NCBI GenBank assembly: GCA_965637545.1
Contig: OZ281494.1
Location: 18,104,001-18,168,000 of the forward strand
From: Phallusia mammillata
Taxonomy: Eukaryota
Direction of reading: 5' to 3'
DNA length: 64,000 nucleotides
The translations under genes were made by a program, and so were the position numbers. Of the stretch, positions 1 to 47,390 are shown piece by piece (position 1 is the stretch's first letter; each line of letters begins with the position of its first letter). The notes under the pieces were generated by a model, which did no database searches, had not been told where the DNA came from, and worked only from the letters and a program-made list of their open reading frames with translations.

Positions 1-591
1 CTTCAGCAGAATGTTGACAACACGGAGGAATGTGAACCGACACAGCAAGAACAGACATTAGTAATTGAACAAATGGGAACTGATGCAGAGGTTATGGTAG
101 TGGAAAAAACATCTGTGGCGTGGTACAAGCGTTGTGTTGTCTGCTATCACCCAAGTGTACCTGATATTACGATCTTGGCTTATTACGATCCAGAACCACT
201 GGCTTTGCGTGAAGCAGGAACTTCTAAGTACTGCTGGCCACGAAAGCATGGACGTAGACTCTTTCTTAACATATACATCGAACCTAAAAAATACATTTTT
301 CATCGCATCGATAACACTCATAATACGGGTTCCTTTCAACTCCCCGGCACACCTCGAGGTCAGTGTCCTCAGTATATCAAGGCATTTCCTAATGGGAAGT
401 TATCCATGTCGACGACAAGTCAACCCAGTTCAGATCCGTTTGTGTTCATACTAAAACACGACAATCGAGGCCCTCAATACTTTCAGGTGCAACATAAAAA
501 AAGTGGCATGTATTTCGGAAAAGATCCAGAAACTTGCAAGGTATTGCTTGTGAATGAAAATGCTCAAGCTATTAACTTTGCACCCTTGTAA
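1..591 (+). CDS. Leaderless beta-trefoil-like (IL-1/FGF-like) protein A1; 5' end lies outside the window
   Basis: Frame 1 is open from base 1 (LQQNVDNTEEC...) to the stop at 591. It is a clear paralog of 6507..7142. The C-terminal pattern DPFVFILKH...FQVQHKKSGMYFG...AINFAPL resembles the last strands of beta-trefoils. Coding status is well supported; the fold is inference. Confidence 0.7.
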   Translation, partial: LQQNVDNTEECEPTQQEQTLVIEQMGTDAEVMVVEKTSVAWYKRCVVCYHPSVPDITILAYYDPEPLALREAGTSKYCWPRKHGRRLFLNIYIEPKKYIFHRIDNTHNTGSFQLPGTPRGQCPQYIKAFPNGKLSMSTTSQPSSDPFVFILKHDNRGPQYFQVQHKKSGMYFGKDPETCKVLLVNENAQAINFAPL

Positions 592-1986
592 AATGTGTTT
601 AATTTGTCAAAATCGTATTACCAAGAACAACGCGTTGACAGTTCGATGTGTAAATTTGCGAGTATTTCCTTTTGGCATCCCACTGATTTGTGGTAACGCA
701 TTGAAATGCCCTTTACAGACAAACGCAACTACTCACAAAACGTTTTTCGACTTATTACTCGCTGTAAAATATTGTAAATACCTACAAGCTTCCAACCCTC
801 GATTTTTCAGTGATTGTTTAAATTAACGGGACACCCTTATTGACGTTTTACATTGTTCTTTACGTCACGTAATTGCCTTACATTAGCAAACTATTTTACA
901 GTTTTATGCTTCATTGAATTCGCAAAAAAGAGCCATATTTGCCAAATTGTCACAAAAATCACAAAATAGTGTCTTTTATACTGGTGTGTGCACTTTAACC
1001 AGCAAACTATTGCCTTTGCTAAATTACCACAACTTGTGCACTTCTCACATAACGCTCAAAATAAACAAAAAGCTGGGTTATAGCCTACAGTTTTTTTGTT
1101 TGCTTATATTATTCGTGTGGTAGTTGCAAATTGTTCAACTGTTTGTGTGCAATACATCATGTCGCATCAGTTCTTCATTATTAGTTTGACAAACGTCAAA
1201 GCTTCGACATCAAGAAACTAATTGGCTAAAACAGGCCTACTCAAATGGCGAACCTTGGTCCTCGTACGAGGCTGTCAGGTTTAAGATGTGGACGTCGACA
1301 GTCTTCAATTTTTTGTGGGTGTCAAGCATTGGCCAGCTGAGCGATTGCGAGGAGCTTGAGATCTTTTTACAATGTTATGTGATGTCACACCACAAGACAG
1401 TACCAACAGAAGGCCAATTCATACCATCAATTAAAAAAAACAGACGATTGTTACGAGAGTTTGTCGTCGTTTTAGTCTTGTCGGAAATGTAATAAACACA
1501 CGTTTAAAACTTTCCGAATGGAGAGAGTGCTAAAAATCTGAATGATTTTTTATGCATGTATACATGACAATTCTTTCACAAGAAGTAAACGTATATTTTT
1601 CAACTCAAACTCATATTTTTGAGTGTATATTTTTGGCATCGCAAGTAAATTGCAAAGAGGCTTATCTGATATGAAATCAGGAAGTTTTGAAACCACTGCT
1701 ATACGTCAATATATTAGATATGCCAATTTTCCCATTACCTGACATAGACACATTGCCTTTGCATAAGTGACAGTATAATGTCTAGACCTCTGCACTTCTT
1801 CACGTTTTATAAATCGACCTTTGACAAAACTATTTCGTTAGAGTTGGAACTGCAAAAAAATCTCAACATCGCCAATGATGACAAACGTTGTTTAATAGAC
1901 GATGATGCGTTTTTCCAAAAAAAAAACAGTTTTAAACAGGTTGTTGGGCTAGGTCAGCGGTTCCCAAACTGGGGTCCGCGGTCCTT

Positions 1987-2358
1987 TTATTTGGCGTCAG
2001 TTTGTGCCACTAAATAAGTTTAAATCAGTGGTTCCCAAACTTTTTCATTATTTTGTCAAAACGGTCCTTTTGCCATTATTTCGAGGGCTCGCGGTCCTTG
2101 TGTAAGCTGGAATGTGTATTTCAGAAAAACGAAAGTTGTGTGCAGGATTTTCGTTAGTTATGCAAAATTGCGCATAATAAAGATCCAAAGACAGCATCTG
2201 ACATCACAGACAAGACAAAAAACACTACGGTTGTGCGCGAACAATTGCATTTTTGATAGTTGTCATTCAATAAAGGCTATTGTTTAGCAATGGAGGCAGT
2301 CATTTTCTCAATTCTCTCGATTTAAACTTATTCAGTGGCACAAACTGACGCCAAATAA
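1987..2358. repeat. Inverted-repeat element with ~40 bp arms
   Basis: TTATTTGGCGTCAGTTTGTGCCACTAAATAAGTTTAAATC (1987-2026) is inverted at 2319-2358 with one mismatch. It lies among hAT-like MITE ends (CAGCGGTTCCCAAAC, CAGTGGTTCCCAAAC). Confidence 0.6.
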
Positions 2359-2676
2359 GATTATAGAATTCTTTTATAGGCCACAATGTTTAACTATTAC
2401 GTTCGTTTATAAATTAACTGTCATGATGTTCTCGAAGATTTCTTACAAATATTGATCGATGATGTTCTTTTTTTCAGTTAACTTTCGAAAGCCGTGACGT
2501 AACAGTTGTTGGCAGAACTAAATCATTATGCTGTGCATCACCGCTGTCGCATTTCCGGATTTGCGAACATTCAATTGGAAGCTTTAACGAGCATTATGCG
2601 TCAGCTCGTTCCTGGCTTTGCACCAGCATCAAGCCATTGGGTCATTGTGATGCAATCAATTTTACATGTGCTAAAT

Positions 2677-3379
2677 CAGAGGTGTCAAACTCGTGGGGTT
2701 CGGGGGCCACATTGCAGTTTGGAAGTTATGCCGAGGGCCGCATGTGATTTTTAATCTAGTTTTATACATTTAAACAACCTTTTCGCTACGACGGCCGCAT
2801 TGCAGATCTTAATTTCACCAACAGTCGCCAATTGCCTGCTGGTTTTTGTTTTAAAATTACAGAATAGGTTTATATCATATATATATGCCATCTATTGACG
2901 CCCCAAAATCTCAGATTAATTTCCAACTTGATGCACAGATTGAGCTACACAGTTCAGTTTTAAATGTTTATGACGTCATAATCCATATTGTGATGTTTTT
3001 TCCATTGCTTGCACAATAGGTCTACAAAAAGTCTGACGCATATGGCTAAGGCCGGTAATACTCTTTTCCGTAACATAAAATCTGTTTAGAGCAGTATGAA
3101 AATCAAAATATTTGGCAAAGGAGTTTTGATTACATCACGGCGGCCAGTACATATATTTTAACGAACATGTTCACGTGTGGCCGTCCGGCTTCAGATTGAA
3201 CGCCCTTGATTGAAACTTAACGCCTTGAGAAACGGTTAAATACTATCGTTTCTGTTCATAACATATGAATTTTGATTAATAAATTTAATAAATAAAAATC
3301 TGACAAAATTGTACAAGTGTTTATGAGTGTTCGTGTGCCGCATTGGAGGGCTTCGCGGGCCGCGAGTTGGACACCCGTG
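2677..3379. mobile_element. hAT-type MITE
   Basis: Imperfect TIRs CAGAGGTGTCAAACTCG / CGAGTTGGACACCCGTG; perfect 8-bp TSD TGCTAAAT. Confidence 0.85.
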
Positions 3380-3503
3380 TGCTAAATCACAATAAAAAGA
3401 AGTAAACAGAATTAGTTAATAATTATTACAAAATAGTTGGTCGCATACTTTCATGGACCAATTAAAATCCTGTATTTGTCAAACCACATAATGTAGTTGT
3501 AAT

Positions 3504-3982
3504 CAGGGAGTCGAACCGGAACTGAACCCGAACCCGCGAACCGGTTTGAGCGGTAAATTTCATTAAACCCGAACCGAACCCGAACCGCTAATTACGATTT
3601 TCCAAAAACCCGAACCGGAGTTGTACCCCATATTTTGTTTGGCGTTGGACCCGAACCGGAACTGAACCAGTAAAAAATGCAGTCTGTTTCATTTTTTTGG
3701 TTTTTTTTTCTAAACAGCACACGCGGGATAACACTCAAAATTCTTCTGGAGTTTTATAAGGCCAGGTAGATGATCGGTAGATTAAGTTGAAACAAATAAA
3801 AATTTGAACCGGTTTAAAAACCGCAAACCGGTTCGGATCGGATAATTTGCCCAAAACGAAACAAAACCCGAACCCGAAAATATACATTTTTAAAAACCTG
3901 AACCGAACCGGAACCCTTAAAAACAAAACGAAGTGAACCCGAACCGAACCTGAACCCATATGACAAGCGGTTCGACTCCCTG
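3504..3982. mobile_element. hAT-type MITE with internal CCGAAC repeats
   Basis: 15-bp TIR CAGGGAGTCGAACCG / CGGTTCGACTCCCTG; perfect 8-bp TSD GTTGTAAT; many internal AACCCG/AACCGA units. Confidence 0.9.
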
Positions 3983-4997
3983 GTTGTAATACCTCTGTCA
4001 TTTTGTTAGCATACAAACATGCGGTTCAATTTTTAGATGACCACAAAACAGCGAATAAGATGATATGCATTTCGGAATGGCAAATTGCAATTCTGTAGAA
4101 CTCTTAAAAACAAAAAAGCCCTAGCTGCAAACTGTAAATTTGTTTTGATATTGTTTTTTTCTTTAATTCTATATTTTTTCTTTAAAATTATATACATTAC
4201 GTTTCATATGTTTTTACTTAGTCGATTAACTGAGCAATATGTAACCCATAGGTGGGTCTTTCGTTGGTCAGTCCTCCATGGCCGTATTACTTGCTGTAAA
4301 GTATAAACTTAGTTCGAGCCGTTCGACATTAACTATGTCAACTGTACAATGTATTTCACGCCACTTTTGCACCAATCAACGCCAACCTAATGTTATATTA
4401 TTCCTTTAAAACGACGGTTTTAGTAATGGATCAAAACCATCAACAGCATGGCTTAAACCGACGATCTCTGTTTGCTTATATCAACTATAAAACAGGAAAA
4501 TCTATAAACGGTACAAACCTTGGTTTAAGCAAAATACTCATTTTTTGTGAAGAAATATATATTTTGCCTAAATTCATGAGAGAGAATATATATTTCGCCA
4601 TCATCAGTTACTTAAACCATTTAAAAAATGAGTGGTCAAACAAACACGGTAAAATGCATGAAAGTTTTTCTCCTCGATTCGGCGCCCAGTGTTGCGCTTG
4701 TTTTGGTTTGGAGGTCAGTTCGAGTAGATTGGAACCACTTTAAAACAGGTTCCGGGAGTTAGTCATGTCAATTTCTTGTTTTCATGTTTTATTGCTTTTA
4801 TGAATTTTACTGTTTTTGTTTGACCACTCATTTTTTCTCGACTTTCAGGACTGATTTTGTTTAAACCAAGAATTTTACCGTCTGTTGGTTTTTGTTTCAA
4901 TGTTTGCATAAAAAAGGCAATTGCCTTTATTTAAAAGGAAAGGAATGTCTAGGGTCTAGGCAAAGAGTCGAACCGCTTGTTATATGACAGGTGTGAC

Positions 4998-5082
4998 CAG
5001 GTTTTTTTTTAAGGTTTGGTTTGGGTGACCGCTAAGTAGTTTTAACCGTTTCGGTCCCCCAAAACACCTTAAAAAAACACTG
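4998..5082. mobile_element. 85-bp hAT-type MITE; short relative of 61138..61302
   Basis: TIR CAGGTTTTTTTTTAAGG / CCTTAAAAAAACACTG; perfect 8-bp TSD GGTGTGAC; internal sequence shared in reverse with 61138..61302. Confidence 0.85.
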
Positions 5083-5452
5083 GGTGTGACCAACACCTCG
5101 ATCGCGATCGACTGGTTGATCGTCTGCTTTTGACTGGTCGATCGCACTAAATTCTCCACTATACTAATCAAAAGCCTATTAATTGAAAAACAAAGATATA
5201 TAAAACAGCACTTCTGACATTTTGACACAACGCACAAATGTGCAATGAGACAATAATTATGTAAATGTCATTTTCTTTGTTGCGTAACAATTGTGATTTT
5301 GGCAACAAATTATGCGGTACGTGCATAAAATAGCAAAGTGAATGAAGTCGTTTTAACGACCTTAGTGCCTTTTTCCTGCGTCAACGTAACAAATTGTGTG
5401 TGACGTCACTATAACAAATCGACTTCCATCGTGTGACAATAATTGTATACAT

Positions 5453-5660
5453 CAGTAGTTCCCAAACTGTGCGTCGCGACGCCCTGGTGCGTCGTCTCAA
5501 TTTTCCAAGGCCGTCGCAGAATAGTTCCGTATTGTGGCCTTTTATTGTTGTATCAATAAACACAACTTTAATAATGAGTATTAACTTTTATTTGCTGGTG
5601 CGTCGCAAGTCCAGAAACCTTTTCCAGAAGCGTCGCAACAAAAAAAGTTTAAGACCACTG
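5453..5660. mobile_element. hAT-type MITE
   Basis: Ends CAGTAGTTCCCAAACT / AGTTTAAGACCACTG; TSD GTATACAT vs GTGTACAT (7/8); internal GTGCGTCGC repeats. Confidence 0.75.
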
Positions 5661-6506
5661 GTGTACATAATAAGTTTAAGAATCGTACGCCCTTTAGTAA
5701 GATGTTATGAAGACGGAAGGGTATTGTCTAAATACTTATTGAGTATTTACTTTCAGGTAACGTTCGCCATCGCTGATTGAAGGTTTCTTGTGATAGAATT
5801 ATATGAATTACCTTACGTTTAACTGGTCAAAAATAATCAATTTTTCATGATGGCATTTCAAAAATATCTTCAGGCAGTTGTAAAATCAAAATCGAAGAAA
5901 CTTTGGTAAAACATTGGAGACCCCTTGTTCAAGCAACACTGTTTGTGGTATTATGCAATTAAGGGCAATTCCGAAATGGAAACAATCAGCCACTAGCTTG
6001 TTTGAGTAAGAAGATAAATTTAAATCTCACCTAAAACATGACTAATCATATACTGCCAGTTACAATTGCCTAGGGAAGATGTATTTTAAAAGCGCGACAT
6101 TTTGACACTCTCGAATATGCACAGATTTTTAACATATGCTCAGATCACCATTCCAAGGATCAAAATTACTTCACGCAATGAAATGTTTTTGCTTTGATGA
6201 GAAATTGGCTTTCGCATCTACGGTGGATAGTACGCAACTTTAATTGTTGTTTTTCGGTATTTGTCACGTCTTAAAAGCCCGCCAAGCCCAACCGAAACGG
6301 AAATGGCAGTTTCACTCACAGTTTGCTGTTTTCTGGTCGTATATATAAACGTGCCGTCTGTTGAACACGGCATACTGATCGAGCCACGTTTACGCAGACA
6401 TATATCAAAGGTTTGGCATTAACTGGCTCACAAGACTGCGCTAAGCTAACCGCAAGTGTGCTTTTTCTTTTAAAATAATTCACCTGCTTTAACTGTTAAA
6501 ATCGCC

Positions 6507-7142
6507 ATGAGCAGAGAAGAAACAGTACCATGTATTGAAATGCTTCAGCAGAATGTTGACAACACGGAGGAATGTGAACCGACACAGCAAGAACAGACGG
6601 TAGCAGTTGAACAAAGGGGAACTGATGCAGAGGTTATGGTAGTGGAAAAAACATCTGTGGCGTGGTACAAGCGTTGTGTTGTCTGCTATCACCCAAGTGT
6701 ACCTGATATTCCGATCTTTGGTGTGGAACTACGGGCTTTATGTGAAGTTATCAATTCAGACTATTGCTGGCCACGAAAGGGTGGACCTAGGCTCTTTCTT
6801 GACCAATACATCGACGCTAAAAAATACATTTTTCATCTCATTGACAACACTGGTAATACGGGTTACCTGCAACACCCCAGCACACGTACACGTCAGTATA
6901 TCAAGGCATTCCCTGATGGGAAGGTGGCCATGTCGACGACAAACCAACCCAATTCAGATCCGTTTGTGTTCATACTAGCACAGGACCAACTAGGGTCCGG
7001 ATCATCCTTTCAGGTGCAACATAAGCGAAGTGGATTGTATTTCGGAAAAAAAGAACAAAAAACTGGCATCTGTTTCGGAAAAGAATCAAAAAACATGGTA
7101 ATACTTGTAAAAGATAATGCTATTGACTTTGCACTCCAGTAA
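6507..7142 (+). CDS. Leaderless beta-trefoil-like protein A2 (211 aa, single ORF)
   Basis: Complete ORF with an acidic N-terminus, WYKRCVVCYHP patch and no hydrophobic signal peptide. Paralog of 1..591 with frame-preserving indels. Confidence 0.75.
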   Translation: MSREETVPCIEMLQQNVDNTEECEPTQQEQTVAVEQRGTDAEVMVVEKTSVAWYKRCVVCYHPSVPDIPIFGVELRALCEVINSDYCWPRKGGPRLFLDQYIDAKKYIFHLIDNTGNTGYLQHPSTRTRQYIKAFPDGKVAMSTTNQPNSDPFVFILAQDQLGSGSSFQVQHKRSGLYFGKKEQKTGICFGKESKNMVILVKDNAIDFALQ

Positions 7143-9064
7143 AATGTGTTTAATTTATAAAAATCGTATATTAGCGATAGCATATGTCTTTTTACGCTAT
7201 ATCGCTCAAACTAACAGTCCAGTGTGTAATTTTGCGAGACCTTTTATCATCCTAAAGCTTTGTGATATTGCATTGAAATCCTTTAAAACAATCTCAGTTA
7301 TTCACAAAACATTTTGCGCCAAGTAATTATTGTAAAATGTCGAGTTTGTGCCATTGGATATGAACATTGTTCTTTATGTCAGGGATGTCAAAACGCAGCG
7401 ATTGTCATTGCAATGCCATGGTTTTTAAACTGTAATAAAGCATAGTTGGTTCTTTCACTATGTTATTTATTACTATATTGTTTTTAATGTAGTTATAACT
7501 AAGTCACTACAGTGGCATTAATAAACATTTTTTTAGTCGTGCAATTGCTTGTTGTCATGTTATACTGCAAAAATGTTTCGATAGTGCGGCCCTCGACTTA
7601 CTTAACACTTGTTAAAAGTTTGGTTTTGGCCCTAAAGTTGTTTGAGTTTGCAACGTTTTGAGACGTTTTCAGACGTTGGTCAATTTTGCAAAAATCTGGT
7701 TTTAGGCAAACTCTGAATGCTTTGTGTTTTGAAAAATGTACGTCAATGAATTGGGAGAAATTTAAAACGACGAAATATTATTCGAGGGTTAACAGTAAGC
7801 TATGAAGCGGATTACATTGTGTAAAGATTTGTTCGGTTCTTCTTTGTGAGTTTGACCACGATTTTCATCAATGACCTCATTTTCATAATGTTCTCAACGG
7901 TTTCTTATCCACTTAACTCTCGAAAGCCGTGACGTAACAGTTGTTGGCAGAAATAAATCATTATGTTGTGCATCACCGATGTCGTATTTCCGGAATTTGC
8001 GAACTTTTGAGACGGAAGCTTTAACAAGCATTATGCGTCAGCTAGTTTCTTGCAACGCTCGTGCGCCAAGTCTTTGGGTAATTCAAAAAGGAAACAATTA
8101 ATTCGTACTTCTAAAACAATTGGTCGTGTCCAATTTAAACTTTAAAACAGCCCCACAATTGATGTTCAACAGCAAATAGACTGATTTGTCTTTCGAAAAG
8201 GAAAACAGATTTCTGCCAAATACACGAATAAAATACAATTTATGTATTTGGCCCAAGCTACAGCGTTTTCGCCTTTATTTGTTAATTCGATTTAAACTAC
8301 TTTTTTAAATTGCTTTTAAATTATATTTATGAATAATTACTTTAAAAAACTTTTTTTTGACAAAATTTTGACCTATGAAGAACTCAAGTATTTAATTACG
8401 CATTATTGTACAAAAAGTTAAAATAAAGCGGTAGGCTAATCTAACTAATGCGAAAGAATGTGCAAAAAAATAACAGAAGGACAAAAATGTGAACTCAGAC
8501 CTAGCGTATTGTGAAAAGGGAAATAAACTAATTCAATGTCAAAAAACTGCAGCTAAGACACAACAACAATTGTTCAATACATTTGTGTAAACGAAACATA
8601 CATTAAGTATCTAAAGCAAAACCGAAGCAAGAGCTGCACCTGCCAAAGTTGTAAAACTGCCAAAATTGTACACGTTTTGACGTGTGTTGAGCATCACACC
8701 GTATCAACCTAATTATTTCACTTAATGGTTTATGATTGTCAATAAGTAGACAATGGGCCATTTACAACAGCATAAAGCAGGCTACAAAGTGTAAAATGAA
8801 AAGTTCACTTTACAACTCCACGAAAATGCAGTTTGTAAACAATTTTGACCATTTAAAAAATTGACTTAGTAAAAAATTTGGCAATTATTGACCTATTCTA
8901 AAAATTTTGACAAATTTTTGACTTTTTTGACAAGTCAAAAAATAATCGCCCTATGAATAACATGATATATGTTTGCTCTAAAAATTACTTGCTGTAAGTA
9001 TAGACGCGAGCCACTCGGCATGAACTGTTTCAACTGTACAATGTATTTCAGCCACTCTTACAAC

Positions 9065-9375
9065 CAGTGCTGGATTAAGGGTCTGCTGGCCTGTAGGCAC
9101 ATTTTATAAGTGGCCCGAAAATCAGGGTTGCCAAGTAAAAAAATAGAATTATCAGTGTTGCCAAATCATTGTCACAAAGATCGTTGTTGCAACTGAAAAC
9201 CCGTTAACTAGTTTTTGGAGGTCAATCAAACAGAGCTAATAAGATAAATACTTACTAGTTTAGAAAATAATTATTTTGAAAACATGACTAAATTTCTACT
9301 GATTTCAAAGTGGCCTGGATTTATGACTGGCCTGTAGGCACGTGCCTACTTTGCCTAGTGGTTAATCCGGCACTG
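9065..9375. mobile_element. hAT-type MITE
   Basis: TIR CAGTGCTGGATTAA / TTAATCCGGCACTG; perfect 8-bp TSD CTTACAAC. Confidence 0.9.
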
Positions 9376-9637
9376 CTTACAACGTGTTTTCACGCAAAGG
9401 TAATGTTTCATAGTTTACTGGTTTAAACAGACCAGCAAATAATTCGATGGCCACAACGTGTAAAAACCTTAAAAATCATTAATTAAAGGGAATGAAATGT
9501 CTAGGCATGGAGTCGAACCGCTTTTCATAGTCATATGTGCGATCGGGTCGGCTTTTTTCGAAATATTTTATATTTTGGGGGTTTAAGCGGTTTAAAACCT
9601 GTTTTCTCAAATTTTCGTTCCACTCTATATCTATAAA

Positions 9638-10020
9638 CAGGGTTGCCATCGACTTGAAACCAAAAATAAGGACAAGTGAAAGATTATTTTTTTATGCCAA
9701 ACGAAACAAACGTTTTGGAACAAATCTTTGCATTGATACGAGCCATGACATATCATTTGCAATATTTTGGCCAGAAACAATCTGTTCCAGCAACTCGTTG
9801 TTCGTAGAAAACTATAAGTGCATCTCACGACAGCTCAGGTCTAGGTTTACTTTTACTTGTAGCAGAGATTTGACTATAGTAATTGTTGAAAATAAGACAA
9901 AATAAGGACTCCAGTCAAAAATAAGGACATTTCTTAGAAATGAGGACAATGAACTTTTCTAAGACATAGCCCTTCCAAATAAGGACAAATCTTAGAAATA
10001 AGGACGGTATGGCAACCCTG
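9638..10020. mobile_element. hAT-type MITE with internal AAATAAGGAC repeats (copy 1)
   Basis: TIR CAGGGTTGCCAT / ATGGCAACCCTG; TSD TCTATAAA vs TCTATACA (7/8); a near-identical copy lies at 48049..48434. Confidence 0.9.
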
Positions 10021-10232
10021 TCTATACAGCCTTGGTGGCGATACCAATAAATAATGTAGGCCACATTTTTACTGTAGTGAATTTATAATTAAGAATTGTT
10101 TAAATTTTTATGGAATAAGACGAAGCGATACCGTTTATCGGTAGAACTCGTGCGGAACAACAAACAAAAAATCATAGACGCTAGATGGGCAGCTAGTCTG
10201 TGTAATGTGTATGGGGTTGCCTTTCTGTTATT

Positions 10233-10325
10233 TTTGGCTAAATGGCCAGGCGCGCCTGACCCACATACAGACATAAAAAAACTTGATCGGAATTCGTCTC
10301 CGGGAGCTTTCTGAGTTCGAACCCA
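10233..10325 (+). repeat. tRNA-derived (SINE-like) repeat, copy 1
   Basis: A-box-like TGGCTAAATGG and B-box GAGTTCGAACC; homologous to the minus-strand copy at ~16102..16196. Confidence 0.5.
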
Positions 10326-11328
10326 ATTAAAAAATATACAGAAAAATATTTGGCAAAATCGATGACGTTGGTTTTCAGTCATCATCAACTTAACAAATTA
10401 CTTTTGACGTCATTACTTAACGACAAACCAACATTCAGTTCTGTAACAATGATTTTTTAGGATTCATCCACCCTTTGCTGATGTTATAAAGACATTAAGT
10501 TAGCGTGTAAATGTTTATACACCATTTTTGGCCCTTTAGAAAATGCGCCATCGGTTTGGATTGAAGGTTGCGTGTGATAAAATTATAACAATTACCTCAG
10601 GTTTAACTGTCAAAAATAATTCTGTACAGTTGCGTTTGAAAAACATATTTGAGCAGCTAAAAATTTAATGATAATTTACCCGATATTAAACATTAGAATG
10701 CATTGTGTTTCATTGGATTGAACATACAACCTTACAAATAACGTCATGTTTGATATGCAGTGGTTCAACGTTGAGGCTAACGACTGTAAATATACCTCCG
10801 AGTACAGTTCTCTGTGTGGGATGAAGCTTCCGTTTCTGCCGAGAAGTGTTTACCGCTTTTGCAGTTGCACAATCACGTGTGGTTCAAGTTTATCCTTTTT
10901 GTTTGGAACGCTTTTGATTTGTTGCTTTTTTTTCCTGAAAATTAGCATGTTTATTTCTGGGCGCTGTAAACAAAATATATAAATATTGAAATGTGAATTT
11001 GTGAATGAAATAAGTGTATTTGCCTTTCCTTAACATCTCTTTATTCTAAAACAAATAACGTATACCAGTTGACAACGGCTATAATTACTGCTTACGGTTT
11101 AGCGCAGCAACGTCAGCTAATCAGTGCTTGCCTTATGCATGATCGGGTAAATAGTTTCCTGATTAAGCGCTTTGGAAGACCGAGAAAGAAAAATAAACAC
11201 TGGTTATTAATACACGGTGTAGTAACAGATGGTCTCTGCATTAGCATCGTGGGTTGGTTGTAAATAGCTGCGGCAGCTGTAAACCTTTCCTTAGTTGGTT
11301 GCGTAGAACCTCTGCAGTTTTTAAGGAC

Positions 11329-12096
11329 ATGGACTTCTTAGACGATTTGTTGCAAGCTGAATCGTTGCTAAGTGATCTCGAAGAAGACAGTGACGACGAT
11401 ACAACTGATCCGGGTTGCTGCCTTTGTTTGTTGATTTGTCCGTGGAAACCTAAAACGTTTTCTGCCCAACTGCAACTCCAAGGCTATGGGTTGTTAAAAC
11501 GCAAGCAGGCCATGACAAAGTATACAGTCAATCCTTTCGTGAATATTTCAACTGAGGGCATTACCAAACCAAAATACGTGAACACTTTTACGGAACAAAG
11601 TCGCAGCGAGTTACAGCCTACAAATGCGTTGTTGCCTTTAGATGATAAAGCTCTCGCAACATGGGCCTTTTCAAGAAAAACAGGAGACACCAACGTTTTA
11701 AACAAATGCAAAGTGGTGGTCTTTCGTGACGATAGCACAGAGTTTTGGAAACCCAAAAGTGGCCAAGTTTTTGTAACAGCAGTATCGTCCTACACACCCG
11801 TATGGACTGTATGGAAAGACGCAAACAACTATTGCGTTTTTGGCATAAATTTTAAAAGAAGAATGTACTACATTGCATGGTGCAACAACAAGGTACGATT
11901 GGTGCTGGGAACAGAACCAGTTGTCAGAAATCCTGTGACCAATGACCAGCGGTTTTTTAAAATGAAACACGATCGGCTGAGCAGAAAGAACATATTCCAG
12001 CACATCGGAACGAAGCAATTCCTAGCTATTGGATCAGATAAATTTCTGACCCTTGTTCCAATGAAGCCTCAGGCCCAGGGCTGGAAGTTGCAGTAG
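11329..12096 (+). CDS. Leaderless beta-trefoil-like protein B1 (255 aa from ATG 11329)
   Basis: ATG 11329 (MDFLDDLLQAES) matches the start of paralog 14786 (MDVVDDLMQAES). Acidic tract DLEEDSDDDTTD, CCLCLLICPWKP motif, then a beta-rich C-terminal domain. Confidence 0.8.
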   Translation: MDFLDDLLQAESLLSDLEEDSDDDTTDPGCCLCLLICPWKPKTFSAQLQLQGYGLLKRKQAMTKYTVNPFVNISTEGITKPKYVNTFTEQSRSELQPTNALLPLDDKALATWAFSRKTGDTNVLNKCKVVVFRDDSTEFWKPKSGQVFVTAVSSYTPVWTVWKDANNYCVFGINFKRRMYYIAWCNNKVRLVLGTEPVVRNPVTNDQRFFKMKHDRLSRKNIFQHIGTKQFLAIGSDKFLTLVPMKPQAQGWKLQ

Positions 12097-12233
12097 TGGA
12101 ATTGTACCAACATTCAGTTAAAATACAAAAACCTTTTTGGTAAACTGATATTTTTACAGCTGCACTTCTGTAATAGTGCCTAGTTTTAGATATCAGAGCC
12201 ATATGTCTGATACTAATTTTGATTCGACTACAC

Positions 12234-12664
12234 CAGCGGTTCTCAACCAGTGGGCCATGGCAATTTTACAAGAATAATGGCTTGGGGAGGAATTGAGAAG
12301 GAATGTAAATTAATTTGAATTATTCTATTTACGGTATAAAGTTACTTTGAGTTTCTGCAACCCCGTATGTTTATGATGTAATAAACTACTGTGTGATTAC
12401 AATAAAGCCAGATAATAGCAGAATATCAATTGTCCAATTATTCGGTCATAACTGAAAGTGCTTGATTAAAGAAGGGAAAGTGCTGTTTTATGATTTTTTG
12501 CATTAACATATTTTGAACTTATTATCTGTTTGAAATATGTCCTGCAGTTTTTTTGTTCTGAACCTACTTTATAGTTGTTTCTTTCTTTCATAAAAATTTA
12601 CTGGGCCACAGAATTTTTGTGCAATGAAAGTGGGCCACGAAAGAAAAAAGGTTGAGAACCACTG
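12234..12664. mobile_element. hAT-type MITE
   Basis: TIR CAGCGGTTCTCAACC / GGTTGAGAACCACTG; TSD GACTACAC vs GACTATAC (7/8). Confidence 0.85.
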
Positions 12665-14785
12665 GACTATACACCATTTTACCTTTTCCTATGTTTACAT
12701 AATACCCGCAGGTACTCAAGATCTTTGTATGTGAGATGTTTATACCATTATTTATTTGGAAGATGTTTTTTCGTTTTTATTTAAATTATTGATTTTTCTT
12801 GTTGATATTTTTATTTGAAACAATTTCTCCACTGTTAAATCTTAAATGTTTTTCTGTTCAATTTTTCTACCTGTTTTACTGTAAATTTCAAAATAAACCA
12901 AAATCGGCATTTTCCTAACGTGGGTAAAAACTTGGCTTAGACATACAAAACGAAGTGCATCTTTAAGAACTGGCTTAGACATACAAAACGAAGTGCATCT
13001 TTAGTCATTTGTTAAATCCCATTTGTTTAATTGCAGCACGCGAAGAGTTCGGAGGAAAATAAGTTAATAAACAAAACGCATTAAAGGCAAAATTCAAGTC
13101 TGTAATTATTAAAGTTTTTTTACAAAAACTGAGAAAAGGGACAACTAATATTTTGATTATTGAAATGTGGCAATTTGTTTATGTCTGGCAGTCTAAATTC
13201 ATTCAGGTCTTGTTTTTTGTAGCCGTCACAGTATGCTTAAAGTTAAATTTTTGTCTAAACGTGTCTAAACGTCGAAAAGTGTCTCAAACAACAGTATCAA
13301 TTAACTTTGACGTTGTAATTTCCATGAAATGTCTACCCGAGTATTTGATTTATCATTATTCGCCCATTAGAATTTGTTATTGATTCGAATGACATTTGTG
13401 GGAACTTTGGCAGATTCAGTTTGATCGTCACCATTTGAGGGGTATTTAAAGTGTTACTTGTCCACAATATGGCAATTAACCAAGTTAAAAACATAATAAA
13501 AGGCGATGCCATTATTGGAATAAGTTTCGTATTTGAATTAGAGGTCGGTTTATCTATTTACAAAATGCCACACAATGCTTCCCTGCTTTATTCATACCGC
13601 GATTGTGAAGTAGCGACTATTTTGGAAATGATAACGAATATGGACATTGTCACTTGTACAGTGCGTTGTAAGACGGTGGGAGGAAGAGCCCTAAAAGAAT
13701 AACGCTGTTCTTTCACACCCGACAGTGCTTCAGCATTGTCTTATATTCGCGTCATTCCAGAAGAAATAGTCAACACGCTATGTCCTGTTTAAATTTGAAC
13801 ATTGTAAGTCAATAATGGCACAACTGTCTGTTTCACCAACAACTGTTTTAGTTTTAATCTTTTTACTACTAACTGCATGTGGTCCAACCACAGACAATTA
13901 CATTGGCCGAGCACACTGCCTTCGACAACTCATTTATGTCATTTGATTTTTCTGTTTCCTTTTTCGTAGGCCCGTGGAAGTTTTGTTGTTGGTTTCAAGT
14001 AATTGGGTTGTTAGTTTTATGTAAATTCCGTTTAATATGTGAATTTATCTGTACTTTTCCCATTAAATTTGAAATCCTTGTTATATTGGTTCTATCCCAT
14101 ATCAATACCTTGTTTTAGTTAGAAGCAGGCTGTTTCAACAAGCATTGTATTATTTAAAAAAATGCTTTTACTTATTAGGGTAGTAAACAAGTCGCAATTT
14201 TTGCTGACTGAATAAAGTACTGAAATCCCTTGAAAAGATTTCCTTTTGCTATATGCTTGAACTAAGTCAAGTTGGTTGAGTTAAGGGCTGTGCGCCTATC
14301 AGAACTACATACATCTGTCTGAATATTTGCATTGATCCACAGTCTAAGAACGAAAGGATGGTCTCACAACCGACAGCATTGAGTGCACTGTAAGACTGTG
14401 GTGAATGGCCTTTCTACGTTCTCATCCCGGAATTCCGCCTGTTTTGCAAAATACTAAACAAATTGCTTTATTTTTTGCTTTACACGATTTGTCTTATAAA
14501 GGTGTTTGTATTGGTGTCAACCTGACGTTTCAAGCAATATGAAATCTGCTAAATGCATGTTGACAACAGTCGAATATTGCAGAACTGATTTTGGATTAGC
14601 GTAATGACGTCACACAATCAGGACAGCTTCTTGCCTATAATAGTTTCCTGTCAGCACGCTTTGAAACACTGACAAAAAATTAAACACCAAGTCGTAGCAG
14701 ATGGCTTGAGAATTAGGAACGCACGTCAGTCCAGAAGCTAGACCATACGAGTCCCAGTAAAACACGTCTTGTAACTTTTGACGAC

Positions 14786-15595
14786 ATGGATGTTGTGGAC
14801 GATTTGATGCAAGCTGAGTCGTTGCTAAGTGATCTTGAAGGAGACAGTGACGACGATACAACTGATCCGGGTTGCTGCCTTTGTTTGTTGATATGTCCGT
14901 GGAAACCTAAAACATTCGCTGCACAACTGCAGTTCAAAGGCTACAGATTACCAAAACGCAAGCAGACCATGGCAAAGTATACTGTCCATCCGTTCACCGA
15001 TTTTAGGACACGCGGCATTACTAAACCAGAATACGTAAACGTTTTTACGCAAGGTTACAACGAGGCTCAGCACTGGAATCCTGACATGGAAGAAAATCGT
15101 ACTAAAGCGTTGTTGCCTATCGAACAAGCAAACAATAAAGACAAAGCTCTTGCGGCATGGGGTATTTCGCAAACTACTGGAGACACTAATGTTTTTAGTA
15201 AATGCAAAGTGGTGGTCTTTCGTGACGACAGCACAGAGTTTTGGACGCCTAAAGGTGGTCGAGTGTATGTCACAGCAGGGTCGTCCTACACACCCGTATG
15301 GACTCTTTGGAAAGACACGAACTACCATTGCGCTTTCGGCATAACTTTTAGAAAAAGGATGTACTACATTGCATGGTGTAACAATGAGGTAAAACTGGTG
15401 CGGGGAACAGAACCAGTTGCCAGAAATCCTGTGACCAACGACCAACGATTCTTTAAACTCGAACACGATCGGCTGAGCAGAAAGAACATATTCCAGCACA
15501 TCGGAACGAAGCAATATCTAGCTATTGGATCGGATAAATTTCTGACCCTTGTCGCAATGAGGCCTCAGGCCCAGGGCTGGAATTTAAAAACGTAG
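14786..15595 (+). CDS. Leaderless beta-trefoil-like protein B2 (269 aa)
   Basis: Close paralog of 11329..12096, with many synonymous differences and in-frame indels confined to the middle segment. Confidence 0.8.
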   Translation: MDVVDDLMQAESLLSDLEGDSDDDTTDPGCCLCLLICPWKPKTFAAQLQFKGYRLPKRKQTMAKYTVHPFTDFRTRGITKPEYVNVFTQGYNEAQHWNPDMEENRTKALLPIEQANNKDKALAAWGISQTTGDTNVFSKCKVVVFRDDSTEFWTPKGGRVYVTAGSSYTPVWTLWKDTNYHCAFGITFRKRMYYIAWCNNEVKLVRGTEPVARNPVTNDQRFFKLEHDRLSRKNIFQHIGTKQYLAIGSDKFLTLVAMRPQAQGWNLKT

Positions 15596-16101
15596 ACATT
15601 ACCAAGTTCCGCAAGGTAATGTCGCTGTTTGTATTTGCATTTCACGGTTTTGTTTAGCATCTGAAAATAGTTATATGTATTGTGAAAAATATATGTATTG
15701 TGAAAGGGCGCAGTTTATATGATATATGCCTTCATTGGTAAAGGAAAAAAAAACATGTTTGAAACAGAGTTGTAAGCGGGTTCAAAATTCGAGTCCGAAC
15801 CCGGCCCGAACCCAGAAGTAAATACCCCAACCGGGTCCGAACCCGAATCGTTTTTGAGAAGCCCGTTTTTTCCCGAAACTTTGATTGGCAGGCCTCTCCA
15901 TAAAAGCCTACAAAACGTACTACTGTACATAATATAATTGAAAACAGCGTTTTAGGGCGGTTGGGCATCAAGTAAAGTCCAGCAACTAGCTACGTAGTTG
16001 GGTAATTTTCTCCAAAACAACAACAGACACAGAATTTGAAGTCATCGCATTTTTTAGAGATAGATTACTCAGATTGATCGTAATTCAGAAACGCATTTTT
16101 T

Positions 16102-16196
16102 ACGAGGTTCGAACCCAGGACACTCCTGGGGACGAATCCCGACCAAGGTTTTTTATGTCTGTATATGGGTCATGCGCGCCAGACCATTCGGCCAAG
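16102..16196 (-). repeat. tRNA-derived (SINE-like) repeat, copy 2
   Basis: The minus strand reads TGGCCGAATGGTCT (A box, tRNA-Leu/Ser-like) ... GGGTTCGAACC (B box); homologous to 10233..10325. Confidence 0.55.
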
Positions 16197-18494
16197 TTCC
16201 GGCCCAGAAACGTATTTTTTGAAAATTCTCCACTGCAGCATTGAGGCGCTATCTGTGGGCGAGACACTTCCTTGTATTTGTATCTTGCAAGTATCGTTTT
16301 CAAGTTGGTTTCGATTTTTTGTTTTGTGTCATTCATAGGCCTTCTAAACAAATAATCATGAAGCGTTTCAATGGCGCTATTGTTGTATTTTGTTTTCTTG
16401 CACCAACACCAGGGAAGCTATACACTGTTTTCAATCAAAAGACAATGTTGCTTCCTGTTAATTAAACTCTTATAATTTTGTTTTTATCTTTTATACACCA
16501 ACAAGTAGCAGCTGTTTAAAACTTTCAGTTTTTACTCTAGAACGCAAAAAAGACCGACTGGTTTATTGACGCAAAACCCTTTATTACACACAAAACAATG
16601 CCTTGCCACAATCGAAAATTTTGCAGTGTTTTGGTGTTGATTCTCATATTTCAGAACATTAAAAACTACAATTATCGTTGTCAAAACACTGGACTTTTGC
16701 GGCCATGTTGAGCCACGCTATACTTAATCGATGAATATTTATCGCAAACATCATTGGTTTTACGTTAAGTTATGTGCTGGCATATATACTGTAGTTTAGG
16801 TTGTCATGTAGTTGGTATAAACGCACAATTAATTTTTTTCCAAGTCACGTAAATAAGCCTCTTTTTTCGCATACCGTTGCGTCTTATTGACCTCAGACAT
16901 GTTTTACAAATCAAATGCTGCTAATATACATGGCATCAAAAGAAATGTAACAAATATTCGATAATAGTCAACGCTTTACTTCGGTTGTGTACAATCAAAG
17001 GTTGATTTGACTCAACCACGGGATCACAAATTCAAGAAATGATAACGGGCAATCATTTTGTGGCCACACTCAGAACGTGTCGTATTATAACACAATTATC
17101 CTTTAAGAACACAAATTGAGTTACATATGTGGATTATTGAAAACAACTGCTAAATGAACCTACCGTAACCCAAAAACACTGAGTGGGTTCCACAATTGCA
17201 TCCTGTAACCCGAAGCAATCCGTTATATTTGGACAAAGTGTTGTGACAACATTTTGCTGGTCATCTGCCTTAGTTTGTGTATGGTTTATTATCGTCGTTT
17301 TTTAGCTTTTATTGAGCAAGGAAACAAATCGTTTATCAAATATATAGTTGCTTTGATTTCCGTTTCTACTTTTTAAACATTTGTTCTGTCCACAAACAGT
17401 CTCATGCGCTTACGGTTGTACAAAAGAATGAACACACTCTGACGTCGTAGGTGGAGGGCTCGTGATGTCATAACAACGGATGAGCTACCTCGCTGTATCT
17501 GCTTCCCCTTTAGCGATAAGATACATACACAGAGTAACAAACTCGGGTTGTAATAACTTTGGAAGACTGTATGCAAGCACATCAAGAAGCAAGCTTTAGA
17601 TGGGTTTAGAAAAAACCCTCTATCGACTGAATTGTGACAAACAGAAAGTTAAGATAAATTAGTACCATGCAGCATGGATGATGAAAATGGCTGAAGATAT
17701 TATGTAACAGATGTGTTATTGTGTCACCATGACACAAAACGATTTTCACCTTACGAAAATTGCACAAAGTTGCATATTATAGGACTGTGTTACCTTTTTT
17801 AGGTCACGCCACCATACCTGCTACAAAAAGAATTCTCACGTGTGAAGCATTACGTAAACCTTGTGCAGTCAACATATATAAAAGAAAAAAGTTCGTTATT
17901 TCCGGTAATTCAACATTGGGGTCAAAATAAAATAAAATAAAAATATCCACTTCGATTTTATAATTATGTAGAAGTATAACGATGATATAATGGAGCCTTG
18001 TTCTAAATAGTAGTTTATCCGGTGTGATCCATGGTTCATAAAACGGTTGCCAAAGTTACAACTTTTATGTTTGTTATTTTCCGTTGTAAAAAGCTTAGAT
18101 ATATGTTTATATTTTATAGCCTAAGCTTAAGAACTTCTAGATTTAGTTGATCTAACTTTGTAGATTCAATTTACCCATTAAAAGATCAATTATGCATCAC
18201 GTCAGCGTGCTATGTGTGGCATGTCTATTTTGTACTGTTCGCACACAATAAGTCTATATACATCTAGTAGCCGGAAGCTAGCCCACAAGGTTCATAATAA
18301 ACCTGGGTCACCAAATCTTATTTTATTAATGCTTGGCCGCCAGTATAGCCAGGAGATCTATTTTTAATACATGTGCACGAAAGCATTATATTGTGCTCGC
18401 GGCAAAGTGTGCATTCCAGGATTGAGTACATGCCACACATTTTATTTTTATTTGTGCATTAAGGTTATGTGTGTAGGTATCGCCTAAGTCAAAT

Positions 18495-19247
18495 ATGAAT
18501 ATTAGTTTGGGTCCGGGCGAAAAGCAACCGCTGATCTCTAACTACGATTCCGATAGTAGCGACGATGAAGAAGACCAGTCTCGCTGTTGTCTGTTTCTTT
18601 TTGTCTGTCCTTGGAAGCCAGGTGCTGTGAGACAAAGACTTCAAGAAAGTGGGCTAGATTTGAGAACGAATAAAAAAGCTCCGCGACCGCACACCGTCAA
18701 TTACTTGCAGGAATTTCCTATGACCAGCCTAGTTCGTCCCGTGTGGTCGACACCCCACCAAGGCCAAGAAGGTGAAGTGACCGACGTGTTACCATACTAC
18801 AAAGATATACCCGACGACAGAATGTATTTTAACTGGGGCAATTATGCAACGGACAGTAATATTTTAAGAAAAAGTTTCCTACCGATTCGGCGCAAAAAAG
18901 GCCCAGAATCGTGGCACAAACAAGGAAGGGTGATCATGGTGAAGAACGATAATGAACCACCAATGTGGCACGTCTGGAGTTCTAAAAATGGCGACTTCAT
19001 TTTCGGATATCCTTCAGGTGGTAAATTTTTTTTCGTGACAGTAAACAATCGGAATCTGGTACGTTTGAAAAAAGGCACCGAGCAAGAGGTAACCAGAGAT
19101 GAAAGACTGTTCGTACGAGTCGCTGAAAGAAAACGTAAAGTTCTTCGTCACAACAAGACCGGAAAATATTTAACCATCGTGCCCAGACTGAAAAGATTGG
19201 CGTTGAGGTCGGAAATTAGTAAGGCAGAAGAATGGGACATTCTGTAG
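18495..19247 (+). CDS. Leaderless beta-trefoil-like protein C (250 aa), distant paralog of B1/B2
   Basis: Shares the acidic tract (DSDSSDDEED), CCLFLFVCPWKP, 'hTVN..', 'W.vWs....FG......ffI...nn.VRL..GTE...D.RlF' and 'H..T.kYL.I' blocks with B1/B2. Confidence 0.8.
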   Translation: MNISLGPGEKQPLISNYDSDSSDDEEDQSRCCLFLFVCPWKPGAVRQRLQESGLDLRTNKKAPRPHTVNYLQEFPMTSLVRPVWSTPHQGQEGEVTDVLPYYKDIPDDRMYFNWGNYATDSNILRKSFLPIRRKKGPESWHKQGRVIMVKNDNEPPMWHVWSSKNGDFIFGYPSGGKFFFVTVNNRNLVRLKKGTEQEVTRDERLFVRVAERKRKVLRHNKTGKYLTIVPRLKRLALRSEISKAEEWDIL

Positions 19248-35190: not shown

Positions 35191-35963
35191 CATAACTTGC
35201 AAGACGAATGTCTTTTAAAGCGACAAAATGCAAAACACACACATGTAAAACAGCGATATACTTCAGATTCAAAGGTTCCTTTTACAAACAAATGTATGGC
35301 ACGGCCATGGGCTCTCCTGTCTCAGTGGCCGTTGCCAACATGGTCATGGAGTCTGTGGAGGAACGCGCCTTGCAAACTTTTGCCAAACCACCACGATTTT
35401 GGCGACGATATGTAGATGATACATTCTGTGTCATTCAGAAACACCAGGTTACAGAATTTCTGCAACATTTAAACAATGTGCAACGAGGAATTGCGTTCAC
35501 TATGGAATTGGAAAGCAAGAACCGGCTTCCTTTTCTAGATGTGGAAATTTTAAAAGCGGCGGATGGTAGGCTTTCCACGCGGGTGTACCACAAGCCGACC
35601 AGCACCATGCGCTATTTACACTTCACATCCCATCATCCTTTGTACCAGAAAAGGGCTGTTGTCAAAGCACTCAAAGACCAGGCCAGACGCTTGACGACAG
35701 ACCCAGCATTGCTTCAGGCGGAGTTGCACAGGGTAAACGAGGCCCTGCGGTTAAATGGCTACCCGAACTGGATTCTCCGTGATCACAAAAAGGTTGCACG
35801 GAAAGAAATCCAGTACAAAGAACGTGCCTTCGTCACCTTACCTTACATACCAAGGTTAACAGATATAATCCGTCGCATGTTAACCGATTTCGGAGTATCG
35901 GTTGGGGTCAAACCAGCAAACACCCTACGTCAGATGCTGTCGCACCCAAAAGACCCTCTAGAT

Positions 35964-46448: not shown

Positions 46449-47390
46449 TTACGACTGGTTGTTGACGAACTTAAAAACACTTGCTTCATCCCTGTCCACC
46501 ATTTCTACTACGTCTTTGCCTGATTTCAGGTATTTACCTACCCTTTTCATTTTGAGCATGAATGTACCGTTATTAAGCGGCGAAACTGTGAAAACTGCGT
46601 GGCGAAGCGATTTGGAAGCTTTTAAGTCTTTGGTGTCGATTAGAACCAGTTTGTCATGGCTGACGAATCTTCGCAAAGAGCTCTCTGTGTGTGAAACCAA
46701 TGCCAGAACATAGAAGTTGCTTGAATCAAAAGACTTTAGACCAAACATTAAGTCATTGCTTTCCGCCACAGTGACGACAAACCAATGAGGACAAAAGAAC
46801 TGCTTGTCGCTGATGGCTTCACCTTCCGCCTTTAGCTTGTCTACGGTAAGAGCCTCCTTGGTCTCAACGTTCACCAGCCTAGCACGGAACATTTCACCGC
46901 TGTTAACCACGCTGTCCTTGCCCAAAGTTCTAAAAATCATGTGCTGAAATTCGCCAACAGTCAATTCTTCATCGTTTTCCTCTTCATCGTGTGGTGTAAC
47001 TTCACTTTGATTGTTATCTTCATCTTCCTGTTGGTTTTTTTCATCATCTGTATTTTGACAAACCAAAATTACTGGTTTGTCGGTGTTTTGTGTTGCATCT
47101 TCCTCATCTTCTACCACCTCTTCAAAGCTTTCTGATGCAACAAGAGTTTCATTTTGTTGCTCATCTGGATCGGCAAGACACGTTTCGTCACATTTGTGGT
47201 TTTCTAGGATAACAAGCTTTTTGTTATCGCACTTACAAGTTTCAACATGCACATTGCTTGGTCCCAGCATTGTAACACTACCATCTGTCAAGAAGTTAAA
47301 CGTAACTTCTTCAAAGGCGAAACCGCCGGAGCATCGGCATTGGCAGAAATCCATTACCGATTTTTGTTCCGAATGCAGTTCAAGCCCCAA
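46449..47390 (-). CDS. Leaderless protein with long acidic linker and C-terminal beta-trefoil-like domain (313 aa), protein D
   Basis: Single 942-bp ORF: Cys-rich N-terminus (FCQCRC), E/D-rich linker, then a ~145-aa beta-rich domain ending AVFTVSPL...FMLKMKRVGKYLKSG...EASVFKF. Confidence 0.7.
   Translation of the reverse strand: MGLELHSEQKSVMDFCQCRCSGGFAFEEVTFNFLTDGSVTMLGPSNVHVETCKCDNKKLVILENHKCDETCLADPDEQQNETLVASESFEEVVEDEEDATQNTDKPVILVCQNTDDEKNQQEDEDNNQSEVTPHDEEENDEELTVGEFQHMIFRTLGKDSVVNSGEMFRARLVNVETKEALTVDKLKAEGEAISDKQFFCPHWFVVTVAESNDLMFGLKSFDSSNFYVLALVSHTESSLRRFVSHDKLVLIDTKDLKASKSLRHAVFTVSPLNNGTFMLKMKRVGKYLKSGKDVVEMVDRDEASVFKFVNNQS

Follow-up and report, generated by a model that had tools for sequence, protein, structure and literature searches.

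A previously undescribed ascidian beta-trefoil superfamily in a tandem gene array of Phallusia mammillata, and its doubtful kinship to IL-1

Introduction

What do the five leaderless, single-frame genes of a tandem array in the ascidian Phallusia mammillata encode, and are they the cytokines that they were taken for? The array opens a stretch of 64,000 nucleotides (nt), hereafter the window (NCBI GenBank assembly GCA_965637545.1, contig OZ281494.1, positions 18,104,001 to 18,168,000 of the forward strand). An original prediction had proposed that its five open reading frames (ORFs), here called A1, A2, B1, B2 and B3, are IL-1/FGF-like beta-trefoil cytokines of an undescribed family. The analysis reported here finds that the five ORFs are real genes, at least partly expressed, and that they belong to a previously undescribed, fast-evolving beta-trefoil superfamily of ascidians; no membership of the IL-1 or FGF families was detectable. 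It appears somewhat probable that the proteins of the array are lipid-anchored cytosolic binding modules whose disordered, acidic N-termini carry a Cys motif.

The array and its two subfamilies

All five ORFs lie on the + strand and their reading frames are uninterrupted (Table 1). The first 36 nt of A1, its ATG included, fall upstream of the window; the complete gene encodes 208 amino acids (aa). The ORFs share one layout, in which an acidic N-terminus is followed by a Cys/hydrophobic patch and then by a domain of about 135 aa. No signal-peptide-like segment was seen in the five ORFs, whose N-termini are hydrophilic and acidic. Five co-oriented ORFs of this architecture, each a single ORF lacking both signal peptide and intron, had been described in the original prediction, and all were located as described, A1 merely being open at the window edge.

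The proposed division into two subfamilies was also upheld. A1 and A2 are 70% identical in amino-acid sequence and B1 and B2 76%; B3 is about 28-31% identical to B2, to which it is tied at E 3e-27. Comparison of A with B by BLASTP found no similarity, and hhalign with shallow profiles gave a weak signal. With a 74-sequence alignment, hhalign matched A to B with a probability of 96.5% (E 9e-10), and the match takes in 120 columns across the entire domain. A genes are also recovered from the genome, at E 4e-5 to 6e-4, by a hidden Markov model (HMM) that contains no A sequence. The two subfamilies are homologous and form one superfamily.

The subfamily duplicates support the earlier description of a duplicating tandem array, and the similarity between duplicates is restricted to the ORFs. 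The ratio of nonsynonymous to synonymous substitution (dN/dS, Nei-Gojobori) is 0.28 for B1-B2 overall and 0.22 in the trefoil, showing that B1 and B2 are under purifying selection; for A pairs it is 0.5-0.8. Between A1 and A2, dS is 0.03 in the 5' part and 0.32 in the trefoil. The first 176 nt are 97% identical (1-176 vs 6543-6718) and the trefoil-coding part (193-470 vs 6726-6994) just 78-86%, a near-identity of the 5' part beside a diverged trefoil that indicates recent gene conversion confined to the 5' part. A 93-nt non-coding element 3' of A1 (2470-2562) and of A2 (7905-7997) is 90% conserved, the remaining flanks having diverged.

Predicted fold and its nearest structures

AlphaFold2 models were obtained for A1 using a 10-sequence alignment and for B2 using six sequences. 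In the A1 model, residues 74-208 form a 12-strand all-beta domain with a predicted local distance difference test (pLDDT) value of about 90, and residues 1-73 are disordered. The B2 model has a pLDDT of 66-85 over residues 170-269 and below 50 over residues 1-169, the aligned trefoil spanning 135-269. Structure searches with the A1 and B2 models matched beta-trefoils exclusively, and for both subfamilies the nearest protein-language-model (ESM-Atlas) clusters proved to be trefoils (RicinB, inhibitor I66, fascin/FRG1, CDT). The beta-trefoil claimed in the original prediction was thereby recovered: the models predict a C-terminal trefoil of about 135 residues, confidently for A and with moderate confidence for B.

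Which trefoil family stands nearest depends on the model and on the search. For the A model, all trefoil families are tied, only about 1-2 Z apart; lectin-type trefoils come first, IL-1 proteins lie 1.4-2.7 Z lower and FGF18 (VIA Z 14.3) stands under the lectins. The first Foldseek matches of the same model are the FGF1-derived Symfoil designs and FGF1, with E 1.5e-4 to 1e-3 and template-modelling (TM) scores of 0.76-0.79. For the weaker B2 model, IL-18 comes first by 1.7 Z in the Foldseek-preselected list only, and a Foldseek-independent search leaves the top rows tied, with IL-1Ra at 11.1 and HA33 at 10.8. Since A and B are homologous yet ranked oppositely, the parent superfamily cannot be read from the fold. 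Fold ranking was rejected as evidence for IL-1 because A favours lectins and the IL-18 lead of B appears only after Foldseek preselection.

Profile comparison against PDB sequences gave a similar picture. The best match of the family profile is Mitsuba-1 (E 2.6e-4), with Symfoil and RyR also among the best, and these matches stem from a generic strand motif, h-K-H-x-x-S-G-K-Y-h. Sub-threshold matches were obtained between the A profile and IL-33 (E 0.84) and between the B profile and fascin chains (E 0.07). The parallels that the original prediction had drawn between motifs of B1 and A1 and those of IL-1beta and FGF2 did not survive, as they are generic trefoil strands that occur equally in MytiLec-derived, FGF1-derived and RyR sequences.

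Family size and taxonomic range

A search with a B-type profile among 1.8 billion representatives returned 94 clusters (50% identity) at E<1e-3. One relative, encoded 23 kb upstream of the window, is identical to CAB3263056.1, a cDNA-derived entry named "uncharacterized protein LOC100187199 [Phallusia mammillata]", whose gene has one intron directly after the first trefoil strand. The other named matches come from Clavelina lepadiformis, Ciona savignyi and Ciona intestinalis, and all are called "uncharacterized". The range of the family seen so far is ascidian only. A word-indexed search of 5.8 billion proteins found no match with B2, one Logan protein with the A profile and one already-known protein with a deep profile. 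Pfam assigned no family, leaving the five ORFs and 74 relatives without a significant match; a literature search found no paper mentioning LOC100187199 and none relevant on ascidian beta-trefoils. That the family is undescribed, as first proposed, is thus consistent with Pfam and with the names of its relatives.

The Phallusia genome holds at least 17 copies, comprising 9-10 of A type (two broken), 6 of B type and one further match, all on one chromosome (8.62, 17.55-17.57, 18.07-18.12 and 32.85 Mb). The copy at 8.62 Mb has a clear signal-peptide-like N-terminus (MALLLCKFGLLLLSCRLVQSAA...) and, judged by it, would be a secreted paralogue in the same genome. Two tandem A genes were found in a related species. 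In Clavelina lepadiformis, CAUIVY010000063.1 carries at 2081-10816 four co-oriented tandem family genes adjoining a choline-transporter-like gene, and this array mixes N-termini of the WF-x-R-x-x-C type and of the Cys-cluster type side by side. The adjacency of both types in Clavelina implies that the mixed array is older than the split of the two ascidian orders, and tandem birth-and-death arrays are shown in both. An origin by horizontal transfer or from a transposon was considered and rejected, given the introns in relatives, the ascidian-wide orthologues and the limitation of duplicate similarity to the ORFs.

Two further ORFs of the window were compared with the family. The ORF at 46449-47390 has a C-terminal region of about 150 aa whose alignment to the family profile is colinear (hhalign probability 18%, E 1.3e-3, 128 columns; hmmsearch 14 bits over profile positions 18-155). 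On this weak evidence it is at best a very divergent family member. Directly after B3, positions 20184-21143 (+) hold an intronless 319-aa ORF that is very acidic, rich in E, K, Q and T, and ends in ...KKKSWFFRLCSGKKTTAMD. The N-termini of subfamily A and of several relatives show this same basic-W-[YF]-x-[KR]-x-C motif, but here no trefoil follows it. The ORF was rejected as a family member since the family profile did not detect it; it may be a trefoil-less derivative.

Evidence that the ORFs are expressed genes

Four sequencing runs, guessed to be RNA, were aligned over 6200-12199. Within this region they cover only ORFs and repeats and leave unique intergenic DNA uncovered, the latter in support of that guess. 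Contigs from three of the four runs (two studies) cover B1 colinearly with the genome, from 11406 to 12199 and beyond, with 0 mismatches. One contig holds the B2 start codon together with 18 nt of genome-colinear 5' flank. B1 and B2 are transcribed. The original prediction had counted a lack of expression against itself; what the transcript-like contigs contain is B1 and the start of B2, with A2 uncovered in all four runs.

Could the ORFs nevertheless be non-functional, either decaying duplicates or chance frames? The uncovered A2, the A-family dN/dS of 0.5-0.8 and the stop or frameshift in two A copies elsewhere are what decay would leave behind. Chance frames are excluded by the B1-B2 dN/dS of 0.28, the transcript-like contigs and the orthologues in other ascidians. 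In addition, B1 and B2 are both transcribed and under purifying selection, orthologues are retained across ascidian orders, the fold is predicted with confidence and duplicates are alike solely inside the ORFs. Taken together, these data make non-functional ORFs extremely improbable.

N-terminal motifs and a membrane-anchoring proposal

The conserved part of the disordered N-termini is a short motif. B orthologues from Phallusia, Clavelina and other assemblies have an acidic tract and, after it, CC-[LF]-x-[LF]-x-x-C-[PR]-W; in these orthologues, which come from three or more species, D27, C30, C31, C37 and W39 do not vary. The motif found in subfamily A and in several relatives is basic-W-[YF]-x-[KR]-x-x-C. 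The N-terminal classes of the 94 relatives were sorted by crude criteria, which gave an MGxxxS/T start in 8 (two of them MGC), a signal-peptide-like N-terminus in about 16, including the Phallusia gene at 8.62 Mb, and a Cys pair or WYxK..C motif in about 17. S-acylation is classically signalled by short Cys clusters among hydrophobic or basic residues, and N-myristoylation by an MG start. A precedent among ascidians is the Botryllus histocompatibility factor (BHF), a leaderless protein whose three N-terminal cysteines keep it beneath the plasma membrane (PMC12065747).

From the Cys-motif and MG-start signals and the BHF precedent, we infer that the window proteins are cytosolic, lipid-tethered trefoils. 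The proteins would remain in the cytosol, and the conserved Cys motif (the D-rich tract with CCxxLxxCPW in B, basic-W-Y-x-R-x-x-C in A) would be S-acylated, tethering them to the cytosolic face of a membrane. There the trefoil, with its variable surface, could act as a ligand-binding or adaptor module. Relatives would replace the N-terminal module by an N-myristoylation-type MGxxxS/T start or by a signal peptide, and such swapping suggests that the family places the same trefoil in different compartments.

Several points weigh against this reading. S-acylation and membrane localisation are read from the shape and conservation of the motif only, and the motif of A, having just two or three cysteines, is less clear than that of B. 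The RNA status of the four runs is only a guess, A2 has no coverage in them, and some A copies may be decaying (dN/dS 0.5-0.8; two of about ten broken). The ascidian-only range rests on the few relatives that carry names.

Relation to IL-1

One alternative is that from which the analysis started, namely that the genes encode divergent leaderless cytokines of the IL-1 family (or IL-1/FGF-like), in which a caspase-type cut takes off the acidic N-terminus as a pro-piece and frees the trefoil to signal via an Ig-TIR receptor; the array would then hold tunicate IL-1 genes that published searches missed. Several points speak for it. A 2026 study reported IL-1 homologues across animals but, among the tunicates Ciona, Botryllus and Styela, no IL-1anc, the invertebrate form (PMC13736523), although IL-1-like activities have been reported from tunicates since the 1980s, according to work cited in PMC9020223. 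The trefoils of the window are leaderless with disordered, acidic N-termini, DxxD motifs lie within the acidic tract of B, the A profile has its sub-threshold IL-33 match, and a STAT gene adjoins the array, as the original prediction had also pointed out (a STAT_bind exon was found; Table 1).

The family-specific marks of IL-1 were searched for with Pfam and with motif patterns (regular expressions), in part taken from PMC13736523. Pfam IL1 (PF00340) gave no match at E<=10 in the five ORFs and does not appear in the family listing of the 74 relatives (E<=1); genome-wide it gave no match at E<=1, with control genomes equally silent. The IL-1 signature (PROSITE PS00253-type) and the (F/L)ES motif were found in 0/5 ORFs, in keeping with the earlier remark that the strict signature is absent; among the 94 relatives, the signature occurs in 0/94 and [FL]ES, anywhere, in 4/94. 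Neither a PDZ domain nor an IL-1 propeptide was found by Pfam in the N-terminal regions of the five ORFs and 74 relatives, regions that are predicted to be disordered. The trefoil is without introns in 5/5 ORFs, the B1 contigs being genome-colinear, and one relative has a single intron. Invertebrate IL-1anc proteins carry a PDZ domain at the N-terminus and the F/LES motif, and their trefoil is divided among 3-5 exons whose phases are conserved (Fontenla-Iglesias et al. 2026, PMC13736523); the window genes show none of the three. On these marks, the comparison with reported invertebrate IL-1-like proteins came out negative.

Other results also speak against IL-1. The top structural matches of B are tied once Foldseek preselection is dropped, and PF01582 (TIR) has only two exon matches genome-wide. 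The Cys-cluster motif, the myristoylation-type starts and the signal peptides of relatives are foreign to IL-1, and they suggest membrane targeting over a pro-piece. On these grounds the proposed IL-1-family membership finds no backing, the fold ranking not singling out cytokines, and no result supports the proposed cytokine role. IL-1-type cytokines at this locus are very unlikely. A shade less likely still is an evolutionary variant, in which the family would be the missing tunicate branch of IL-1: an IL-1anc descendant that lost the PDZ domain and the introns (e.g., by retroposition), acquired a pro-region with a lipid anchor and multiplied in tandem, with cleavage of membrane-tethered pro-forms in the acidic DxxD tract releasing the cytokine. 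If true, the molecules behind the IL-1-like activities of tunicates would be identified.

Relation to FGFs, lectins and fascins

Derivation from FGFs, either as intracellular FHF-like proteins or as secreted growth factors, would agree with the Foldseek list for A, which is headed by FGF1-derived Symfoil designs and FGF1, and with a single match of Pfam FGF (PF00167) among the 74 relatives (1/74, E 0.12). The same Pfam model finds nothing in the window, while outside it, as a positive control, it recovers six canonical FGF loci, which are multi-exon. The HBGF/FGF signature was found 0 times by regular expression, and FGF18 ranks under the lectins. The FGF likeness that had been claimed for the family is not sustained, and FGF-derived proteins are hardly credible here.

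A different possibility is that the proteins are lectin- or toxin-like defence effectors that bind glycans of microbes or predators, like mytilectins, SeviL and fungal cytoplasmic lectins, and that the array expanded in an arms race. The top PDB profile match, Mitsuba-1, is a MytiLec-derived design, RicinB-type clusters are among the ESM-Atlas neighbours, some relatives appear to be secreted, and both the high dN/dS of the A family and the birth-and-death turnover of the arrays would suit such a role. However, the Mitsuba match comes from the generic "KHxxSGKF" strand motif, which is present thrice in the designed protein, and a three-fold sequence repeat is absent from the family. The trefoils contain no QxW or a single one each, so that (QxW)3 is absent, and HPxGG was found in 0/5 ORFs and 0/94 relatives. 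No Ricin_B or other lectin Pfam match was obtained at any threshold reported for the five ORFs and 74 relatives. Conserved residues resemble core residues rather than a sugar site, and glycans would be out of reach for cytosolic lipid-anchored forms. The likeness to Ricin-B/R-type lectins is structural only, and glycan-binding effectors are unlikely. Best hits to lectin or fascin trefoils with intact binding sites had been named in the original prediction as speaking against it; lectins do lead for A structurally, but the sugar-binding motifs are missing.

Fascin is the sole family that recurs in Pfam, with matches in 5/74 relatives (best E 0.0013) and in B3 (E 0.19), all below the Pfam cut-off. 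These matches, together with that of the B profile to fascin chains and the myristoylation-type N-termini of 8 relatives, raise the question of whether the proteins are membrane-cytoskeleton linkers of the hisactophilin/fascin type, in which the trefoil, held by its lipid anchor, would bind actin below the membrane. Hisactophilin, itself a trefoil, is myristoylated and binds actin. Its histidine richness is absent from the family, fascin ranks structurally under the lectins, and an actin role misfits the secreted relatives, which leaves actin linkers, like IL-1-type cytokines, very improbable. Among the readings weighed, cytosolic lipid-anchored binding modules are therefore preferred.

Other features of the window

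The coordinates of all features are given in Table 1. Beyond the array, the window contains exons of a STAT and of an iodothyronine deiodinase, NXPE-related genes, and two ORFs that look like a fragment of a Penelope-like retroelement, judging by their sub-threshold Pfam matches. Between A2 and B1, many short loose-ended contigs were seen at 9000-10400, at high depth in four of the four runs; this stretch is a dispersed transcribed repeat.

Table 1. Array genes, their parts and neighbouring features in window coordinates
Feature	Position	Strand	Remarks
A1	1..591	+	Subfamily A; frame 1, open at window edge; codons 13-208 and stop inside window
A1 trefoil domain	about 184-588	+	Part of A1
A1 W-Y-K-R-C-V-V-C motif	121-144	+	Part of A1
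A2	6507..7142	+	Subfamily A; 211 aa
A2 trefoil	about 6717-7139	+	10-residue insertion near C-terminus
A2 WYKRCVVC motif	6663-6686	+	Part of A2
B1	11329..12096	+	Subfamily B; 255 aa counted from ATG conserved with paralogue
B1 acidic tract plus CCLCLLICPW	11416-11445	+	Part of B1
B1 trefoil	about 11689-12093	+	Part of B1
B2	14786..15595	+	Subfamily B; 269 aa
B2 CCLCLLICPW	14873-14902	+	Part of B2
B2 trefoil	about 15188-15592	+	Part of B2
B3	18495..19247	+	Divergent subfamily B gene; 250 aa
B3 CCLFLFVCPW	18585-18614	+	Part of B3
B3 trefoil	about 18843-19244	+	Part of B3
Iodothyronine deiodinase exon	22156-22551	-	PF00837, 8e-37
STAT_bind (DNA-binding-domain) exon	28206..28355	-	PF02864, 30 bits, E 1.1e-4, above curated cut-off; outside family
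Reverse-transcriptase and GIY-YIG ORFs	35208-36798	+	Both sub-threshold in Pfam
Putative sixth member (at best)	46449..47390	-	313-aa ORF beyond STAT; acidic middle region
Two paralogous signal-peptide-bearing ORFs	49855-50256, 57925-58377	+	NXPE N-terminal exon-like; no Pfam match
NXPE4_C domain gene	52538-53479	+	8e-51

Significance

The beta-trefoil is a very common binding scaffold, and another family with this fold is by itself unsurprising. What makes this one noteworthy is its size (94 clusters at 50% identity; 17 genes or more in a single genome) and its apparent confinement to the closest invertebrate relatives of vertebrates. Its modularity is unusual, as the trefoil occurs behind any of three N-terminal targeting devices (Cys cluster, myristoylation-type start or signal peptide). 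The family is an obvious candidate for the missing tunicate IL-1, though present evidence speaks against membership. Whatever the outcome of the IL-1 question, the family profile would let annotators of ascidian genomes name dozens of "uncharacterized" genes.

Comparison with known systems

With the IL-1 superfamily and IL-1anc the family shares the C-terminal beta-trefoil, the lack of a signal peptide, a non-trefoil N-terminal part and lineage-specific tandem expansions, and the weaker B2 model has its best structural match in IL-18. It differs from them in lacking the Pfam IL1 match, the PROSITE signature, F/LES, the PDZ domain and trefoil introns, in having a conserved Cys-cluster motif, and in that the confident A model stands nearer to lectin trefoils. 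FGFs have the same fold, FGF1-derived designs top the Foldseek list of A and some FGFs are leaderless; true FGF genes are multi-exon and recognised by Pfam, whereas the array ORFs are not recognised.

Mytilectins and SeviL are likewise small leaderless trefoils from expanded gene families of marine invertebrates with the strand motif KH-K-x-SGK-[FY], and the MytiLec-derived Mitsuba-1 is the best PDB sequence-profile match (E 2.6e-4). Unlike the mytilectins, the ascidian family lacks the three-fold repeat and HPxGG and has a long disordered N-terminal extension with a Cys motif. Hisactophilin of Dictyostelium and fascin resemble it as cytosolic trefoils, paired in relatives with an N-terminal lipidation signal, and through the sub-threshold Fascin matches. 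The window genes, in contrast, have a Cys cluster instead of an MG start, are not histidine-rich and contain a single trefoil, not four.

The closest parallel for the proposed anchoring is BHF, which is also ascidian, leaderless and largely disordered, and whose N-terminal cysteines are needed for localisation beneath the plasma membrane (PMC12065747). Its published description, disordered regions and helices but no trefoil, led to BHF being set aside as a possible relative and kept as a precedent for anchoring only.

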